From Pseudomonas aeruginosa PAO1 (GTDB taxonomy: Bacteria; Pseudomonadota; Gammaproteobacteria; Pseudomonadales; Pseudomonadaceae): DNA of 64,000 nt. Both the position numbers and the translations under genes were made by a program. Positions 3,916 to 60,718 of the stretch are shown here, one piece after another. Where the stretch lies: NCBI RefSeq assembly GCF_000006765.1, contig NC_002516.2; one strand, 5' to 3'. Numbering within the stretch: position 1 is the first letter of the stretch; each line of letters opens with the position of its first letter. The notes under the pieces were generated by a model. That model saw only the letters and a list, made by a program, of their open reading frames with translations. It did not search any database and was not told where the DNA came from.

Positions 3916-4740
3916 ATGCCCAAGCACCTGCGTGTCCTGACGTTCCTCGCGCTCAGCCTGCCATTAGCGGCCTGGGCGGAAGTTCCTGTGTATGACGGCG
4001 TTGCCGCCAACAATGGCGGCAACGTTCCTCCTTCCGGGTATGGCACGGCAGGTGCCGGCGGCGCCTTTGCCGGAGGTGGGGTGACAACCCCCACCTCCGT
4101 GCAGGGCGAACTGTTCATGCAGCTCCAGCAGATGCAGGACGAGTTGGCTCGCCTGCGTGGCACGCTCGAGGAGCAGCAGAACCAGATCCAGCAGCTCAAG
4201 CAGGAAAGCCTGGAACGCTACCAGGACCTCGACCGTCGGATTTCCGGTGGTGGCGCTCCCGCTGCACAGAATTCCGCACCCGCTGGCGCCATCAACGCCA
4301 ATGGGGCGCCTGCGGCTCCCGCAGGTAACAACGCACCGGCGCCGAGCAGCGAGCCGGGCGACCCGGCGAAGGAGAAGCTCTACTACGATGCGGCCTTCGA
4401 CCTGATAAAGAGCAAGGATTTCGACAAGGCGAGCCAGGCGTTCAATGCCTTCTTGCGCAAGTACCCGAACAGCCAGTACTCCGGCAACGCCCAGTACTGG
4501 CTCGGCGAGGTGAACCTGGCCAAGGGCGACCTGCAAGGTGCCGGCCAGGCCTTCGCGCGGGTCAGCCAGAGCTACCCCAGCAGCCAGAAGGTGCCCGACT
4601 CTCTGTACAAGCTGGCGGACGTCGAGCGTCGCCTGGGTAACAACGACAAGGCCAAGGGTATCCTCCAGCAGGTCATTTCCCAGTACCCAGGCACTTCGGC
4701 CGCTCAACTGGCGCAGCGCGATCTCAAGAACCTTCGCTGA
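3916..4740 (+). CDS. cpoB: Tol-Pal protein CpoB/YbgF (coiled coil plus TPR)
   Basis: Signal peptide, coiled coil, TPR segment NAQYWLGEV; follows pal. Confidence 0.93.
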   Translation: MPKHLRVLTFLALSLPLAAWAEVPVYDGVAANNGGNVPPSGYGTAGAGGAFAGGGVTTPTSVQGELFMQLQQMQDELARLRGTLEEQQNQIQQLKQESLERYQDLDRRISGGGAPAAQNSAPAGAINANGAPAAPAGNNAPAPSSEPGDPAKEKLYYDAAFDLIKSKDFDKASQAFNAFLRKYPNSQYSGNAQYWLGEVNLAKGDLQGAGQAFARVSQSYPSSQKVPDSLYKLADVERRLGNNDKAKGILQQVISQYPGTSAAQLAQRDLKNLR

Positions 4741-5621: not shown

Positions 5622-6296
5622 ATGAACCAGAAGAAAGCGGTCATCCTGCTCTCCGGCGGCCTCGACTCCGCCACCGTTGTCGCCATGGCCAAGGCCGACG
5701 GCTACGCCTGCTACACCATGAGTTTCGACTACGGCCAGCGCCATCGCGCCGAGCTGCAGGCCGCCGAGCGCGTGGCCCGGCAGTTGGGCGTGATCGAGCA
5801 CAAGGTGATAGGGCTCGACCTCAATGGCATGGGCGGCTCGGCATTGACCGACGAGAGCATCGCGGTGCCCGAGTCGCCTAGCGAAGGTATACCGGTGACT
5901 TACGTGCCGGCGCGCAATACGGTGTTCCTCTCGCTCGCCCTGGGCTGGGCCGAGGTCCTGGATGCCCGTGACATCTTCATCGGTGTGAATGCGGTGGATT
6001 ACTCTGGTTATCCGGATTGTCGCCCTGAATTCGTCGAGGCTTTCGAGCGCATGGCGAACCTGGCAACCAAGGCGGGCGTGGAAGGCAATGGCTTCCGCAT
6101 CCAGGCGCCGCTGCAGTATCTGTCCAAGGCGCAGATCATCCAGGCGGGCGTGGCGCGCGGGGTGGATTACGGCCTGACGGTGTCCTGTTATCAAGCCGAT
6201 GAGCAGGGACGTGCGTGCGGCAAATGCGATAGCTGCCGGCTGCGTGCGGATGGCTTCGCGGCGGCTGGTATTTCCGACCCGACGCCATATTTCTGA
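5622..6296 (+). CDS. queC: 7-cyano-7-deazaguanine synthase QueC
   Basis: SGGLDS motif, YVPARN, C-terminal CGKCDSC zinc site. Confidence 0.96.
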
Positions 6297-56946: not shown

Positions 56947-58197
56947 ATGAAAATTCTTCCCGTTCCGATGCTGGCCGCGGGGCTGGCGTTGCTGCCGTCG
57001 TTCGCCCAGGCGGAGTTTTTTGCCGACGGCAAGGCCGGCCTCGAACTGCGCAATTTCTATTTCAATCGCGACTATCGCCAGCCCGGCGCCAGCCAGTCCT
57101 ATTCGGAGGAGTGGGCGCAGGGTTTCCTGTTGCGCTACGAGTCCGGCTACACCGAGGGGCTCTTCGGCCTGGGTGTCGATGCGCTGGGCCTGCTGGGTGT
57201 CAGGCTGGACTCCTCGCCAGAGCGATCCGGTAGCGGTCTGTTGCCGTATTCGACGAGCGACCGGCGCGCCGCCCACGACTATTCCAGCCTGGGCCTGACC
57301 GCCAAGCTACGGGTCTCGCACAGTACGCTGAAGATCGGCACCCTGATGCCCAGGCTGCCGGTGGTGCAGTTCAACGACACGCGCCTGCACCCGCAAACCT
57401 TCCAGGGCGGACTGCTGGAAGTGAACGAGATCGACGGGCTGGCGCTGCAGTTCGGCCAGCTGCGCCAGGTCAAGCAGCGCGACTCGACCAACGCCGAAGA
57501 CCTCGGCATCACCCGCGGCAACAAGCGCAACGTACTGGCGGGCCGGCACCCCGGCAGCGACCGCTTCGACTTCGCCGGCGGTACCTACCGCTGGAGCGAG
57601 CGCCTGAGCAGCAGCTACCACTACGCCAACCTGGAGGATTTCTACCGTCAGCATCATCTCGGCGTGCAGCACCTCTTGCCGCTCGCCGATGACCAGTCGC
57701 TGAAGTCCGACATCCGCTGGGCGCGTTCCACCGACGAGGGCGGCAGCCGCGTCAACAATCGCGCGCTGAATGCGCTGTTCACCTATCGCCTGGGCGGCCA
57801 CGCCTTCGGCCTCGGCTACCAGCGCATGTCCGGCGACAGCGGCTTCGCCTACCTGGCCGGGACCGATCCGTATCTGGTCAACTTCGTGCAGATCGGCGAT
57901 TTCGCCAACAAGGACGAGCGCTCCTGGCAGTTGCGCTACGACTACGACTTCGCCGCCATCGGCCTGCCCGGCCTGACATTCATGAGCCGCTACCTGCGTG
58001 GCGAACACATCGACCTTCTGGACGGCGGTGGGCGCGGCAAGGAATGGGAGCGGGACACCGATATCGCCTACCTGGTGCAATCGGGGCCGTTGAAGAACCT
58101 GGGGATCAAGTTGCGCAACGGCACCTTCCGCAGTGATTTCGGCAACGACATCGACGAGACCCGGCTGATCGTCAGCTACGCGTTGCCGCTGTGGTGA
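56947..58197 (+). CDS. opdD: OprD/Occ-family porin (OpdD)
   Basis: Signal peptide, LELRNFYFNRDY, EWAQGF, C-terminal ETRLIVSYALPLW. Confidence 0.88.
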   Translation: MKILPVPMLAAGLALLPSFAQAEFFADGKAGLELRNFYFNRDYRQPGASQSYSEEWAQGFLLRYESGYTEGLFGLGVDALGLLGVRLDSSPERSGSGLLPYSTSDRRAAHDYSSLGLTAKLRVSHSTLKIGTLMPRLPVVQFNDTRLHPQTFQGGLLEVNEIDGLALQFGQLRQVKQRDSTNAEDLGITRGNKRNVLAGRHPGSDRFDFAGGTYRWSERLSSSYHYANLEDFYRQHHLGVQHLLPLADDQSLKSDIRWARSTDEGGSRVNNRALNALFTYRLGGHAFGLGYQRMSGDSGFAYLAGTDPYLVNFVQIGDFANKDERSWQLRYDYDFAAIGLPGLTFMSRYLRGEHIDLLDGGGRGKEWERDTDIAYLVQSGPLKNLGIKLRNGTFRSDFGNDIDETRLIVSYALPLW

Positions 58198-58230
58198 AGC
58201 GGACTTGAGTTTCCCGATGTTTCCGCGCCA

Positions 58231-58261
58231 TTGACCCTGTAGTGGCTACAGCCTTTTCACT
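58231..58261 (+). promoter_or_regulatory. MerR-type (CadR/PbrR-like) promoter-operator
   Basis: TTGACC, then a 19-bp spacer containing the dyad CTGTAG-tgg-CTACAG, then TTCACT. Confidence 0.75.
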
Positions 58262-58295
58262 GGAAGCCGTCAGATCCAGACGAGAGGGTTGTGCC

Positions 58296-58571
58296 ATGGG
58301 GTTCTTCGAACGGTTGTTGATGGGTGGGCGTCATCATGGACAGGGCGGTGGTCATCACGGCGGCGGTCATCACCGCGGTCAGGGCGGCTATCCGCCGGCG
58401 CCAGTCGCGGTGGGAATGGCCTGTCGCGCCTGCCGCACCGCGAATGCGGCGACGGCACGATTCTGCCAGGGCTGCGGCGGCGCCCTGGCGCCGCTGCGCT
58501 GTATCGCCTGCAGCGCCGATCTCGCGGCGGGCGCGAAGTTCTGCGGCGCCTGCGGTGCGCCGCAGCAGTAG
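58296..58571 (+). CDS. 91-aa His/Gly-rich double zinc-ribbon protein
   Basis: GAGAGG RBS; three HH pairs and four CxxC motifs. Confidence 0.85.
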   Translation: MGFFERLLMGGRHHGQGGGHHGGGHHRGQGGYPPAPVAVGMACRACRTANAATARFCQGCGGALAPLRCIACSADLAAGAKFCGACGAPQQ

Positions 58572-58573
58572 CC

Positions 58574-59050
58574 TCAGTCGACGGCGAGGATTTCCACCGC
58601 AAGGGGGGAGTCCTTCGCCCCGGTCTCGTCGCCCGGGTGCCTGCCGATCAGGCTCTGGCCCAGTGGCGAGCGAGGCGTGATGACCAACACCTCGCGACCT
58701 TCGCAATCGATCTTCAGCCCGGCCGCCTCGGGGCCGAGGAACACTGTTCGCCGGCTGCCGTCGGCGTTCAGCAGGGTGACCAGCGCGGTGAGCTGGATGC
58801 CCTGTTCCTCGTCGAAATCGCGCAGCACCAGGTTGCGGTACAGGCCCAGCGCCTGGCGGATCTCCTCGACCCGGCGCGACTGCCCGGCGGCCAGGTAGGC
58901 CGCTTCCAGGCCGAGGGTGTCGTACTTGTTCTCGGCGACGTTCTCTTCGTGGGTTGCCGTCTCATGGGCGGTCTGCGCGGCGCGGACGGCGACTTCCAGG
59001 TCCGCGGCGAGCTTTTCCGTGATCAGGCGCAACAGCTTTTTCTTGTCCAT
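58574..59050 (-). CDS. GreA/GreB-family protein
   Basis: Coiled coil ending AENKYDTLGLEA; C-terminal VITPRSPLGQSLIG. Confidence 0.85.
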   Translation of the reverse strand: MDKKKLLRLITEKLAADLEVAVRAAQTAHETATHEENVAENKYDTLGLEAAYLAAGQSRRVEEIRQALGLYRNLVLRDFDEEQGIQLTALVTLLNADGSRRTVFLGPEAAGLKIDCEGREVLVITPRSPLGQSLIGRHPGDETGAKDSPLAVEILAVD

Positions 59051-59224
59051 GTCGGGTAGGCGGGGGCTGGCCGGCGAAGGCGTGCATGGTACGGGAAAGA
59101 CGGCGGATCGCGACAGCTCGGAGCCAGTATGAAAACTCGGAATGACGTGGCGAATAAAGGTCGTTTGTCGCTACCGGGCAAACCGACTAAAACGAGCGGA
59201 AACGAACAGCCAGGAGAACCTCAC

Positions 59225-60718
59225 ATGATCGACGGATTGCTGCGCAGTCTCGGCCTCGACCCCAATGCCTTTCGCGATGGCGAGCTTGCCGTGCATACCC
59301 CCATCGACGGCAGTCGCCTGGCTGCGGTGCGACTGGAGGGGCGCGCCGCCGTTGCCGCCAAGGTCGAGCGCGCCGAACAGGCGTTCCGCGCCTGGCGCCA
59401 GGTGCCGGCGCCGCGCCGTGGTGAACTGGTGCGGCTGTTCGGCGAGGAATTGCGTCGGCACAAGGCCGAACTCGGCGAACTGGTGTCCTGGGAGGCGGGC
59501 AAGATCACCCAGGAAGGCCTCGGCGAAGTCCAGGAAATGATCGATATCTGCGACTTCGCGGTGGGCCTCTCGCGCCAGTTGTACGGTCTTACCATCGCAT
59601 CCGAGCGTCCCGGCCACCACATGCGCGAGACCTGGCACCCGCTGGGCGTGGTAGGCGTGATCAGCGCGTTCAACTTCCCAGTCGCGGTGTGGTCGTGGAA
59701 TACCGCGCTGGCGCTGGTCTGCGGTAATTCCGTGGTCTGGAAGCCTTCGGAGAAGACCCCCCTCACCGCACTGGCCTGCCAGGCACTGTTCGAGCGTGCC
59801 GCGCGGGCCTTCGGCGGCGATGCGCCGGCGCACCTGAGCCAATTGCTGATCGGCGACCGCGAGGCCGGCGAAGCGCTGGTGGACGCCCGTCGCGTCGCCC
59901 TGGTCAGCGCCACCGGCAGCACTCGCATGGGGCGCGAAGTGGCGCCGCGGGTGGCGGCGCGTTTCGCTCGCTGCATCCTCGAACTGGGCGGCAACAACGC
60001 GATGATCCTGGCGCCAAGCGCCGACCTCGACCTGGCGGTGCGCGGCATCCTGTTCGGCGCGGTGGGCACCGCCGGGCAGCGCTGCACCACCTTGCGCCGG
60101 TTGATTGCCCATGAGTCGGTGAAGGACGAGATAGTCGAGCGCCTCAAGGCAGCCTATTCCAGGGTCCGTATCGGTCATCCGCTGGAGGGCAACCTGGTCG
60201 GGCCGCTGATCGACGAACGCAGCTACCTGGCCATGCAGGACGCCCTGGCGCGAGCCCGCGAGCAGGGGGGGCGGGTGTTCGGCGGCGAGCGGCAATTGCA
60301 GGAGCGCTATCCGGATGCCTACTACGTGTCGCCGGCCATCGTCGAGATGCCGGGACAGACCGAAGTGGTGCGCACGGAGACCTTCGCACCGATCCTGTAC
60401 GTGGTCGGCTACCGCGATTTCGACGAGGCCCTGCGCCTGAACAACGAGGTTCCCCAGGGACTGTCGTCGTGCATCTTCACCACCGACCTGCGCGAGGCGG
60501 AACTGTTCCAGGGCGCGGCGGGCAGTGACTGCGGGATCGCCAACGTCAACATCGGCACCAGCGGGGCGGAAATCGGCGGGGCGTTCGGCGGCGAGAAAGA
60601 GACCGGCGGCGGTCGCGAGTCCGGCTCGGACGCCTGGAAGGCCTACATGCGACGGCAGACCAACACCGTCAACTATTCCCGCGAGCTGCCGCTGGCACAG
60701 GGCATCACCTTCGATTGA
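59225..60718 (+). CDS. amaB: Delta1-piperideine-6-carboxylate / aminoadipate semialdehyde dehydrogenase
   Basis: ALDH7 motifs SAFNFP, LELGGN, GQRCTT; AGGAGA RBS favours ATG 59225 over 59129. Confidence 0.88.
   Translation: MIDGLLRSLGLDPNAFRDGELAVHTPIDGSRLAAVRLEGRAAVAAKVERAEQAFRAWRQVPAPRRGELVRLFGEELRRHKAELGELVSWEAGKITQEGLGEVQEMIDICDFAVGLSRQLYGLTIASERPGHHMRETWHPLGVVGVISAFNFPVAVWSWNTALALVCGNSVVWKPSEKTPLTALACQALFERAARAFGGDAPAHLSQLLIGDREAGEALVDARRVALVSATGSTRMGREVAPRVAARFARCILELGGNNAMILAPSADLDLAVRGILFGAVGTAGQRCTTLRRLIAHESVKDEIVERLKAAYSRVRIGHPLEGNLVGPLIDERSYLAMQDALARAREQGGRVFGGERQLQERYPDAYYVSPAIVEMPGQTEVVRTETFAPILYVVGYRDFDEALRLNNEVPQGLSSCIFTTDLREAELFQGAAGSDCGIANVNIGTSGAEIGGAFGGEKETGGGRESGSDAWKAYMRRQTNTVNYSRELPLAQGITFD

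Follow-up and report, generated by a model that had tools for sequence, protein, structure and literature searches.

Zrd, a CadR-regulated double zinc ribbon protein of Pseudomonas aeruginosa, represents a family linked to metal efflux genes and MerR-type promoters

A small gene of Pseudomonas aeruginosa PAO1, controlled by CadR and encoding a 91-aa protein with a double zinc ribbon, belongs to a protein family whose genes in most loci adjoin metal exporters or follow a MerR-type promoter. The gene occupies positions 58296 to 58571 (plus strand) of the window, by which we mean the whole 64,000-nucleotide stretch of contig NC_002516.2 that was analyzed, and it is left out of the PAO1 annotation. 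We consider it probable that the product is a cytosolic accessory that handles metal in the Zn/Cd(/Pb) efflux response. Judged by its sequence, the gene is the one named zrd and described as a CadR target of P. aeruginosa by Barrows et al. (2025, Front Microbiol 16:1608957; PMC12301328), with the same operator, the same location between opdD (PA1025) and PA1026, the same two CxxC-N10-CxxC ribbons, and the same disordered N terminus. An initial annotation of the window had called the locus an undescribed heavy-metal response unit, but the gene, its regulation, and the idea of metallothionein-like sequestration were published in July 2025 (PMC12301328). Nothing is therefore categorically new about the gene, its promoter, or its CadR control in P. 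aeruginosa. What our analysis adds to that study is the breadth of the family, the start codon, purifying selection, the identity of the domain, and the linkage to efflux genes and MerR-type promoters. The linkage of zrd to exporters or CadR/ZntR-type promoters in dozens of genera turns a one-species curiosity into a family whose role in metal efflux can be tested and is probably general.

The open reading frame translates into 91 residues followed by the stop codon TAG (58569-58571), exactly as the initial annotation had read it. The composition it described was also seen, with six histidines in three HH pairs (residues 13-14, 20-21, and 25-26) and four CxxC motifs (residues 43-46, 57-60, 69-72, and 83-86). 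The good ribosome-binding site it had noted corresponds to the Shine-Dalgarno sequence GAGAGGG on the plus strand at 58282 to 58288, 7 nt before the ATG, and its statement that no PA number falls between PA1025 and PA1026 agrees with PMC12301328. An OprD-family gene lies upstream of the operator. On the other side, a convergent PA1026-like gene on the minus strand (58574 to 59050; 158 aa, GreA/GreB C-terminal-like) has its stop codon at 58574-58576, 2 nt from that of zrd, as had been claimed; we treat this gene as context outside the zrd unit.

The promoter of zrd is of the MerR type, again in line with the initial annotation. On the plus strand, a -35 hexamer TTGACC (58231 to 58236) and a -10 hexamer TTCACT (58256 to 58261), both read from the sequence, are 19 bp apart, an overlong spacing typical of this class (range, 19 to 20 bp). 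The spacer holds a palindromic operator with a confirmed inverted repeat, CTGTAG-N3-CTACAG (58237-58251; half-sites at 58237-58242 and 58246-58251, plus strand). A standard sigma-70 scan with 16- to 18-nt spacing returned no promoter, in keeping with the MerR type. The CadR operator GACCCTGTAGTGGCTACAGCCTT (58233 to 58255, plus strand) is identical over all 23 nt to gDNA2 in Table 1 of PMC12301328. The CadR consensus matched the 64-kb window only once, at zrd (0 matches expected from 100 shuffles), and 10 further P. aeruginosa genomes and 2 of P. paraeruginosa carry the operator unchanged (100% conservation). In the published experiments, CadR bound gDNA2 by EMSA and ChIP, and zrd transcription was induced by Cd and Zn in RT-qPCR, lost in a cadR deletion, and rescued by complementation (PMC12301328). 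Together with the operator identity, which is our own contribution from sequence, these data support the placement of zrd in the CadR regulon, as the initial annotation had proposed.

At its N terminus the protein carries the octapeptide MGFFERLL (58296 to 58319, plus strand), a conserved head defined by position counts over 70 family members, in which it reads M-[GS]-[FLI]-[FLW]-[ED]-[RK]-[LM]-[LF]-G; AF2 predicts a short helix at residues 5 to 8. A likeness of this head to the N termini of SPFH/zinc-ribbon proteins was judged uninformative. The Gly/His-rich tail that follows (residues 9 to 31; 58320 to 58388, plus strand) is predicted to be disordered (pLDDT of about 50 to 60). It contains the three HH pairs and a 15-nt tandem repeat, GGCGGCGGTCATCAC, at 58344-58378 on the plus strand (TRF: period 15, 2.3 copies). 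A Pro-rich linker (residues 32 to 42; 58389 to 58421, plus strand) includes the internal ATG of M41 (58416-58418), which is the start of a 51-aa form in NCBI annotation. Across the family, glycine makes up 31% and histidine 10% of the region N-terminal to the first CxxC (motif, tail, and linker together), and the number of tail histidines is modest (six in the window protein; family median, five).

The C-terminal part consists of two zinc ribbons, C43-x2-C46-x10-C57-x2-C60 (58422 to 58475, plus strand; pLDDT of about 76 to 78) and C69-x2-C72-x10-C83-x2-C86 (58500 to 58553, plus strand). Residues 43 to 87 matched the full Pfam DZR profile (PF12773; positions 1 to 45 of 45) at 42.3 bits, above the gathering score of 27.3 (E = 8.6e-11), and the second ribbon also matched Zn_Ribbon_1. 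All 71 family sequences contain DZR, the eight cysteines (43, 46, 57, 60, 69, 72, 83, and 86) are invariant in them, and their spacing is identical in 66 members. We therefore classify Zrd by sequence as a DZR-domain protein with two predicted Cys4 sites. Cysteine spacing and the AF2 model both predict two separate mononuclear ribbons, as does the published AF3 model (PMC12301328). The AF2 model was of moderate quality overall (pLDDT 67, pTM 0.33), with a pLDDT of 75 to 82 in the ribbon region. A Foldseek search of this model against the PDB gave no match at E <= 0.001; the nonsignificant matches comprised ribosomal zinc ribbons and single zinc-finger modules that bind ubiquitin or Ran, and this result says nothing about function. 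A family-profile search of PDB sequences found only generic zinc-ribbon chains (for example, DZANK1 and ribosomal eL40 and bL32), with a weak match to a Cu-ATPase fragment (E-value 0.28) that we dismissed, and NCBIfam yielded only subthreshold matches and no named family.

The domain searches also ruled out membership in known families of small metal-binding or pump-associated proteins. The metallothionein-like label of the initial annotation does not hold at the family level, as the ribbons are predicted mononuclear Cys4 sites of the DZR type and Metallothio_Pro did not match. Metallothionein families were absent both from the Pfam matches of Zrd (E <= 1) and from the 13 families matched by the 71 members. 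The HMA domain of CopZ-type proteins (GMxCxxC) matched neither Zrd nor the family, whereas neighboring ATPases matched it in the same searches. DUF1490, the PacL domain, had no match in Zrd or the 71 members, and no hydrophobic segment that could form a transmembrane segment is visible in the Zrd sequence.

Zrd-like proteins are 87 to 121 aa long and combine the MGFFERLLGG motif, the Gly/His-rich tail, the Pro-rich linker, and the C-terminal double zinc ribbon. An alignment of the window protein with 70 members spans its full length, at 38 to 74% identity, and places it in the family as defined. We found full-length homologues in the hundreds, and 251 representatives at 50% identity matched Zrd at E <= 1e-10. 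We then examined the genomic context of 70 nonredundant zrd loci, in which neighboring families were identified by Pfam. Exporter genes (P1B-ATPase, HME-RND, or CDF) lay within 5.5 kb in 53 loci, and 11 further loci had no exporter neighbor and a MerR-type promoter directly upstream of zrd. In total, 64 of the 70 loci had one or the other, and the window zrd has the promoter and no exporter neighbor; the initial annotation had asked whether homologues carry the operator or adjoin cadA/CDF genes, and the answer is strongly positive. A P1B-ATPase gene was found within 5.5 kb in 38 loci, 23 of them with the gene adjacent (within 200 nt) on the same strand. Other neighbors were RND (29 loci), CDF (10), and MerR (18) genes, and mgtC was adjacent to zrd in 11 loci. 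A metagenomic homologue sits between czcCBA and a group of mgtC, PhoD, P-type ATPase, and CDF genes.

The same promoter layout recurs in the family. Promoters at homologous loci were scored with an explicit motif, and a MerR-type promoter was found 60 to 116 nt upstream of zrd in 14 of the 70 loci. As a test of prediction, we chose Pseudomonas chlororaphis, Dickeya dadantii, and Cupriavidus pinatubonensis after the hypothesis had been formed, and all three had the promoter upstream of zrd. In these 17 homologous loci, the hexamer TTGAC[CT] precedes the palindrome and the spacer is always 19 bp. The motif matched 30 times in 723 kb, always upstream of zrd or close to a neighboring P1B-ATPase gene; for 11 of the 16 matches not before zrd, the ATPase start could be placed within 200 nt. 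Legionella has a different sensor family, with the gene order arsR-zrd-P1B-ATPase.

These observations suggest how Zrd may act. The Cd/Zn sensor CadR switches on the MerR-type promoter, and translation beginning at the upstream ATG would yield the 91-aa cytoplasmic protein. Once Zn2+ or Cd2+ increases in the cytosol, newly synthesized apo-Zrd could bind the ions, firmly through its two Cys4 sites and weakly through the His tail, and thereby buffer the cytosol. It would probably pass metal to, or act alongside, CadA-type P1B-ATPases, CzcCBA, and CDF exporters. Metal binding, its stoichiometry, and the hand-off to pumps are what we infer, and buffering or chaperoning is a plausible reading of the sequence. 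Several points count against a metal-handling role: P. aeruginosa zrd adjoins no exporter, the His content of the tail is modest, and the structure matches, none significant, are to binding or ribosomal zinc modules. Most zinc ribbons with Cys4 sites are structural, and they frequently serve as modules that bind proteins or nucleic acids. With two Cys4 sites per 91 aa, the protein is also a poor bulk sink compared with SmtA-type clusters.

Synteny fits buffering, chaperoning, and a purely structural or regulatory partner role equally well. A bolder version of the metal-handling role, which we hold only tentatively, is that the family supplies P1B-2 ATPases and HME-RND modules with their missing cytosolic metallochaperone or adaptor for Zn/Cd(/Pb). 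The His/Gly tail would collect labile metal, the MGFFERLL head and the ribbons would dock on the pump, and the metal would then pass across, so that Zrd would be for Zn/Cd what CopZ is for Cu-ATPases; such a protein would be widespread in Beta- and Gammaproteobacteria and annotated so far only as "zinc ribbon domain-containing protein." It is rather doubtful, although with several points in its favor, that Zrd is instead a structural or regulatory partner whose ribbons bind structural zinc and dock, so that it stabilizes, localizes, or tunes a P1B-ATPase or RND pump or binds some other target, nucleic acid for instance. Analogies are AcrZ on AcrB and the PacL scaffolds of mycobacterial Ctp ATPases, and in PacL the scaffold role is essential and the His-rich metal motif merely accessory (PMC13460109). 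A partner role also agrees with the same-strand P1B-ATPase adjacency and the mgtC neighbors described above, the resemblance of the invariant head to a docking peptide, and the zinc fingers among the structural matches, which bind ubiquitin or Ran in the matched entries. Several genomes moreover hold two to three zrd copies, each in a different efflux cluster (for example, at three loci of one MAG). However, Zrd has no transmembrane segment, EA repeats, or DUF1490, and the family-wide Gly/His composition of the tail fits a metal ligand better than a scaffold. The gene also stands alone, away from pumps, in P. aeruginosa, Variovorax, Acidovorax, Dickeya, and P. chlororaphis.

The remaining alternatives concern the gene itself. 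That the frame is open means little, because four other frames are open over the same GC-rich stretch, and P. aeruginosa has at least 14 rare deletion or frameshift alleles. One P. paraeruginosa genome carries a net -2 frameshift; it was set aside as evidence against N-terminal translation, since the species representative ATCC 9027 is in frame, and it is strain specific or a sequencing error. The idea of a chance frame or decaying pseudogene is nevertheless effectively refuted. The DZR match, the hundreds of full-length homologues, and a dN/dS of 0.27 against P. paraeruginosa ATCC 9027 (a conservation check that the initial annotation had called for) lift zrd above chance, and its induced transcription has been published (PMC12301328). 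Nor is the frame disrupted in most strains: intact alleles lie on at least 1,700 contigs, and every broken form is represented by one to three member sequences. We see very little chance that the gene acts chiefly through its RNA, with the transcript induced by CadR serving as an antisense regulator of the GreA-like factor PA1026. Such regulation would suit the 2-nt distance between the stop codons, and we found neither a terminator between the two genes nor an intrinsic terminator-like site 3' of zrd on the plus strand up to 59300; the tail-to-tail order is kept in P. paraeruginosa despite the absence of opdD. However, the protein is conserved in dozens of genera where PA1026 is not a neighbor, its coding sequence is under purifying selection, and an Rfam search of 57900-59300 returned zero matches and no known sRNA. 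Antisense action would at most be a side effect in P. aeruginosa, compatible with a function of the protein. Equally improbable is that only the 51-aa ribbon product is made from M41 and the His/Gly region is an untranslated leader. NCBI annotates that form on at least 1,000 contigs, a downstream start could not be excluded in PMC12301328, the N terminus is predicted to be disordered, and GC3 is just 0.62 over the first 40 codons versus 0.86 in the ribbons. Against this, the N-terminal motif and tail are conserved as protein in about 70 species, which share 38 to 60% identity, and dN/dS is 0.27 for the N terminus plus linker versus 0.25 for the ribbons. In P. aeruginosa, allele length (86, 91, or 96 aa) changes by complete GGGHH units, in frame and 15 nt at a time. 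The upstream ATG has a proper Shine-Dalgarno sequence, and homologues place AAGGAG-like sites equally far from their MG/MS start codons, whereas the GGTGGGA directly 5' of M41 is improperly spaced. The in-frame N terminus is also intact in 9 of 10 genomes whose annotation gives the 51-aa form. The conserved tail, purifying selection, and purely in-frame length variation thus identify the upstream ATG as the real start, so that, on sequence grounds, the 51-aa form most common in NCBI annotation is truncated and the 91-aa protein is the true product. A widely propagated annotation is thereby corrected from 51 to about 91 aa.

Several known systems bear comparison with Zrd. It shares with Pfam DZR the pattern CxxC-x10-CxxC-x8-CxxC-x10-CxxC, with the knuckles [AS]RFCQQCG and AKFCGQCG. 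DZR is a generic domain of many architectures (SPFH proteins, kinases, phosphatases, and DZANK1), and the Zrd family adds the MGFFERLLGG head, the Gly/His tail, and the metal-efflux context, which no Pfam or NCBIfam model captures. The bacterial metallothioneins SmtA/BmtA and Pseudomonas PmtA resemble Zrd in being small, Cys rich, metal induced, and proposed cytosolic Zn/Cd sinks, but they do not match it in sequence. They form polynuclear Zn3-4 clusters (Cys9His2), whereas Zrd is predicted to have two mononuclear sites and a lower metal-to-residue ratio. SmtA is under an ArsR/SmtB repressor and Zrd under a MerR activator, although an arsR-family regulator gene immediately precedes Legionella zrd. 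In the Cupriavidus metallidurans pbr operon, PbrD is a cytosolic, Cys-rich, Pb-specific metal-binding protein of about 240 aa, unrelated to Zrd in sequence; its gene accompanies that of a P1B-ATPase behind a CadR/PbrR-type MerR promoter, and the protein probably sequesters metal for the pump. CopZ/Atx1 proteins are likewise small, soluble, and coregulated or coencoded with a P1B-ATPase, and they serve as a hand-off model, but they bind Cu(I) through a ferredoxin-like HMA fold with GMxCxxC. For the ZntA/CadA-type pumps of Gram-negative bacteria, we know of no established cytosolic chaperone or buffer dedicated to Zn/Cd. The small accessory proteins PacL1-3 of Mycobacterium tuberculosis resemble Zrd in that their genes share an operon with those of Zn/Cd P1B-ATPases; they contain a disordered region and, optionally, a His-rich metal motif, and they act as local metal buffer and scaffold (PMC13460109). 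Unlike Zrd, which is soluble and has no sequence relationship to them, they are anchored in the membrane, carry DUF1490 and EA repeats, and lack zinc ribbons.

A tblastn search of PLSDB plasmids with the low-complexity filter on returned one match, an 847-kb P. aeruginosa record labeled as a plasmid, and thus gives no evidence of plasmid-borne spread of zrd. Database names of family members are generic or wrong, such as "adenylate cyclase" and "ribosomal protein L40E." The window allele itself has arginine at position 44 (CRAC), and 10 other P. aeruginosa genomes have proline there.

The zrd open reading frame (ORF) occupies positions 58296 to 58571 on the plus strand and encodes exactly 91 residues. 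Its six histidines form three HH pairs (residues 13-14, 20-21, and 25-26), its four CxxC motifs lie at residues 43-46, 57-60, 69-72, and 83-86, and a GAGAGGG Shine-Dalgarno sequence stands 7 nt 5' of the ATG. An OprD-family porin gene lies upstream. On the other side, zrd meets a convergent PA1026-like gene (58574-59050, minus strand; 158 aa, weak GreA/GreB C-terminal match) tail to tail, with 2 nt between the TAG stop of zrd and the opposing stop (58569-58576). The initial annotation had described the residue count, motifs, ribosome-binding site, and stop gap correctly. The bare ORF is weak evidence for a gene, because four other frames are likewise open over this GC-rich stretch. The coding status of zrd rests on a Pfam DZR (double zinc ribbon) match at residues 43-87 (42.3 bits against a curated threshold of 27.3; E = 8.6e-11), on its homologues, and on purifying selection. 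Codon 44 (58425-58427) is Arg in the window allele, making the first knuckle CRAC; this position is Pro (CPxC) in 10 other P. aeruginosa genomes and in most family members. The exact 91-aa sequence was absent from a collection of 15 billion proteins.

The promoter upstream of zrd is of the MerR type, as had been proposed. Its -35 (TTGACC, 58231-58236, plus strand) and -10 (TTCACT, 58256-58261, plus strand) elements are separated by a 19-nt spacer that contains the perfect inverted repeat CTGTAG-N3-CTACAG, and a scan upstream of zrd found no ordinary promoter with 16- to 18-nt spacing. The CadR-like palindrome occurs only once in the 64-kb window (0 expected from 100 shuffles). Positions 58233-58255 are identical to gDNA2 (GACCCTGTAGTGGCTACAGCCTT), described by Barrows et al. 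(Front Microbiol 2025; PMC12301328) as the second high-affinity CadR site in PAO1 and located in the 376 bp that separate opdD (PA1025) from the convergent PA1026. CadR binds this site in vitro (EMSA) and in vivo (ChIP) (PMC12301328). The same authors found the ORF, missing in the PAO1 annotation, by blastx and named it after zinc ribbon domain protein. They reported that Cd2+ and Zn2+ induce zrd and that this induction is abolished by cadR deletion and restored by complementation. Their AF3 model has a pair of Cys4 sites, and its N-terminus is disordered; they proposed metallothionein-like sequestration, left a downstream start codon possible, and left the function of the protein open (PMC12301328). 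We found no later zrd papers in the literature searched. The initial annotation was therefore right to place zrd in the CadR regulon and wrong to call the unit undescribed: it had rediscovered a real regulon member and arrived at the published hypothesis. The gene, its regulation, and the metallothionein-like idea, and with them the finding as first given, are already known. Three modest additions were not found in the searchable literature: the linkage to efflux across the family, the correction of the start, and the polymorphism of the repeat.

Using Zrd aligned with a metagenomic homologue as the query, we scanned one genome per species and obtained 80 loci. After start-codon refinement, 77 of them encoded small proteins of common architecture, 76 of 87 to 121 aa and one of 62 aa, the latter from Variovorax sp. 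E3 (L063) with an apparent N-terminal frameshift. The other three matches (L025 5176-6303, L062 879-2009, and L053 5239-6186) were excluded as proteins of 315 to 376 aa with a different architecture; their C-termini carry two or three zinc ribbons (L053 has two), and the two Kiritimatiellae proteins among them start with MGLF[DN]K, similar to the Zrd head. The family head follows the consensus M-[GS]-[FLI]-[FLW]-[ED]-[RK]-[LM]-[LF]-G. Gly makes up 31% and His 10% of everything N-terminal to the first CxxC (head, tail, and linker), where the family median is five His, and a Pro-rich linker joins the Gly/His tail to the ribbons. Among 71 sequences, all matched DZR, the eight ribbon Cys were invariant, and the spacing CxxC-x10-CxxC-x8-CxxC-x10-CxxC was identical in 66; no Pfam domain covered the N-terminus in any of them. 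An exhaustive profile search yielded 251 representatives at 50% identity (E <= 1e-10), and most of the best 150 matches were full-length (86 to 122 aa). Members come chiefly from Betaproteobacteria (Paraburkholderia, Variovorax, Herminiimonas, Comamonas, Acidovorax, Collimonas, Thiobacillus, Cupriavidus, and Bordetella petrii), and further ones from Legionella, Marinobacter, Dickeya, Stutzerimonas, P. chlororaphis, and P. paraeruginosa. Their generic source name is "zinc ribbon domain-containing protein," and wrong names include "adenylate cyclase," "ribosomal protein L40E," "amidophosphoribosyltransferase," and "RPABC4/Spt4." In a genome paper on Cupriavidus metallidurans BS1, a "zrb" zinc-ribbon gene is drawn, uncommented, flanking a czc cluster (PMC7019866).

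To describe the surroundings of the family, we clustered all neighboring ORFs within 5.5 kb and used Pfam to identify the real clusters that recurred. Of 70 nonredundant loci, 53 had one or more exporter genes. P1B-type ATPases (E1-E2 plus HMA) were found at 38, CzcA-like RND proteins at 29, CzcB-like membrane fusion proteins at 23, MerR-family regulators at 18, outer-membrane factors and MgtC at 15 each, CDF proteins at 10, and EptA at 9. A random gene should lie within 5.5 kb of a P1B-ATPase roughly 1% of the time, as estimated from typical copy numbers rather than computed. The ATPase gene adjoined zrd on the same strand within 200 nt at 23 loci, a low estimate, since ORFs that overlap zrd were left out. 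The usual orders were merR-[operator]-ATPase-zrd and czcCBA-(mgtC)-zrd-ATPase/CDF. P0016, the metagenomic homologue, is flanked by czcCBA on one side and by genes for MgtC, PhoD, a P-type ATPase, and CDF on the other, and in Legionella the order is a regulator gene of the arsR family (a different metal-sensor family), zrd, and the P1B-ATPase gene. An MgtC-family gene stands directly beside zrd (22 to 150 nt, same strand) at 11 of the 70 loci (L010, L015, L023, L030, L041, L047, L056, L080, and others), and EptA-like phosphoethanolamine transferases and a flgB-like gene recur in these efflux clusters.

The promoter motif TTGAC[CT]-[CT]T[AG]NAG-N3-CT[AT]NA[GA] was searched on both strands of 723 kb. 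All 30 occurrences lay upstream of zrd or near a neighboring P1B-ATPase gene: 14 loci, mostly without a nearby exporter, carried it 60 to 116 nt upstream of zrd, and 11 of the 16 motifs not before zrd had an ATPase start assigned within 200 nt. Just 6 of the 70 loci lacked both an exporter neighbor and the promoter, 3 of them on contigs of at most 7.4 kb. Stand-alone zrd genes in P. chlororaphis, Dickeya dadantii, and Cupriavidus pinatubonensis, picked after the hypothesis was formed, all had a 19-bp-spacer promoter upstream (3/3). Across bacteria, shared operons, MerR-type promoters, or an ArsR-type regulator tie zrd to modules for Zn/Cd/Pb efflux. In Dickeya dadantii (L100 ~4300-4400), the -35 and left operator half-site cttgaccctatagtaac is tandemly repeated about four to five times before the complete MerR-type promoter.

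The commonest NCBI form of zrd is a 51-aa protein starting at the internal M41 (58416-58418; P0167), found on at least 1,000 contigs; another 713 carry an 86-aa form. Of 10 genomes annotated with the 51-aa form, 9 had an intact in-frame MGFFERLL N-terminus, giving 91 or 96 aa, and all 10 had an identical CadR operator. The short form is probably a systematic start-codon misannotation. A 15-nt tandem repeat (GGCGGCGGTCATCAC, 2.3 copies, 58344-58378) encodes the GGGHH units of the tail, and the 86-, 91-, and 96-aa alleles of P. aeruginosa are whole units apart, so that length changes preserve the frame and the number of His pairs varies among strains (one to three units). In a comparison with the in-frame 93-aa homologue of P. 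paraeruginosa ATCC 9027, the N-terminus plus linker had a dN/dS of 0.27 and the ribbons one of 0.25, both from small counts. Distant species also conserve the head and tail. From the intact N-termini, in-frame repeat units, dN/dS, and distant conservation, we infer from sequence rather than protein data that the upstream ATG (58296) is the real start, which answers the start-codon question left by Barrows et al. (PMC12301328).

Intact alleles prevail, with at least 1,700 contigs carrying one, and the disruption in the majority of strains that the initial annotation named as a refutation is not seen. Disrupted alleles are rare: at least 14 carried differing deletions of 5 to 87 nt, all within nt 111-200 of the gene (58406-58495), which covers the linker end and first zinc ribbon. 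Most are frameshifted and annotated from alternative-frame starts. These deletions could reflect a deletion hotspot or, as several share a submission batch (locus tags APB38-61), an assembly artifact. In P. paraeruginosa GCA_003032395.1 (L007 ~4045-4080), +3 and -5 nt in the linker give a net -2 frameshift, so that the His/Gly N-terminus no longer shares a frame with the ribbons; in ATCC 9027 the frame is kept.

An AF2 model built with the 71-sequence alignment gave pLDDT values of 75 to 82 for residues 41-90 and ~50 to 60 for the N-terminus, where residues 5-8 are modeled as a short helix. Foldseek found no significant match to the model in the PDB; its hits were single zinc-knuckle or ribbon modules of ~26 residues. 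A PDB sequence search returned generic ribbons only. The predicted fold is a flexible arm bearing two mononuclear Cys4 ribbons, with nothing further readable from the model. By membership, the protein is Zrd itself and a DZR-domain protein. The domains defining metallothioneins, HMA chaperones, and PacL proteins were tested and are absent. Of the metallothionein-like protein or chaperone that the initial annotation envisaged, the function as a metal sequestration protein or chaperone is plausible; the metallothionein and HMA domains are missing. Zrd may be likened to PbrD, CopZ, and PacL1 (PMC13460109) as a small accessory protein encoded with a P1B-ATPase, with metal binding presumed.

Newly made apo-Zrd would bind Zn2+ or Cd2+ at its Cys4 sites and His tail, buffering the cytosol in the early response, and would probably cooperate with efflux pumps. 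Buffering, chaperoning, and PacL-like scaffolding are inseparable by sequence. The tight adjacency to P1B-ATPases and the multiple copies per genome, each in a different efflux cluster, lead us to lean toward a pump partner; the existence of stand-alone copies favors a general buffer. Alternatively, the transcript rather than the protein might act, antisense to PA1026. No terminator-like site was found between the two stops or just beyond, so CadR-induced transcription should run antisense into the GreA-like gene, and the tail-to-tail arrangement is kept in P. paraeruginosa. However, the Zrd protein is conserved in places without PA1026, and antisense action can therefore only be a local side effect. 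In P. paraeruginosa (L007 3807-3962; L019 ~5850-6001), opdD is absent between the PA1024 homologue (NMO) and zrd, and this species keeps zrd, its promoter, and the PA1026 homologue; opdD is therefore an insertion/deletion difference beside a conserved zrd-PA1026 pair.
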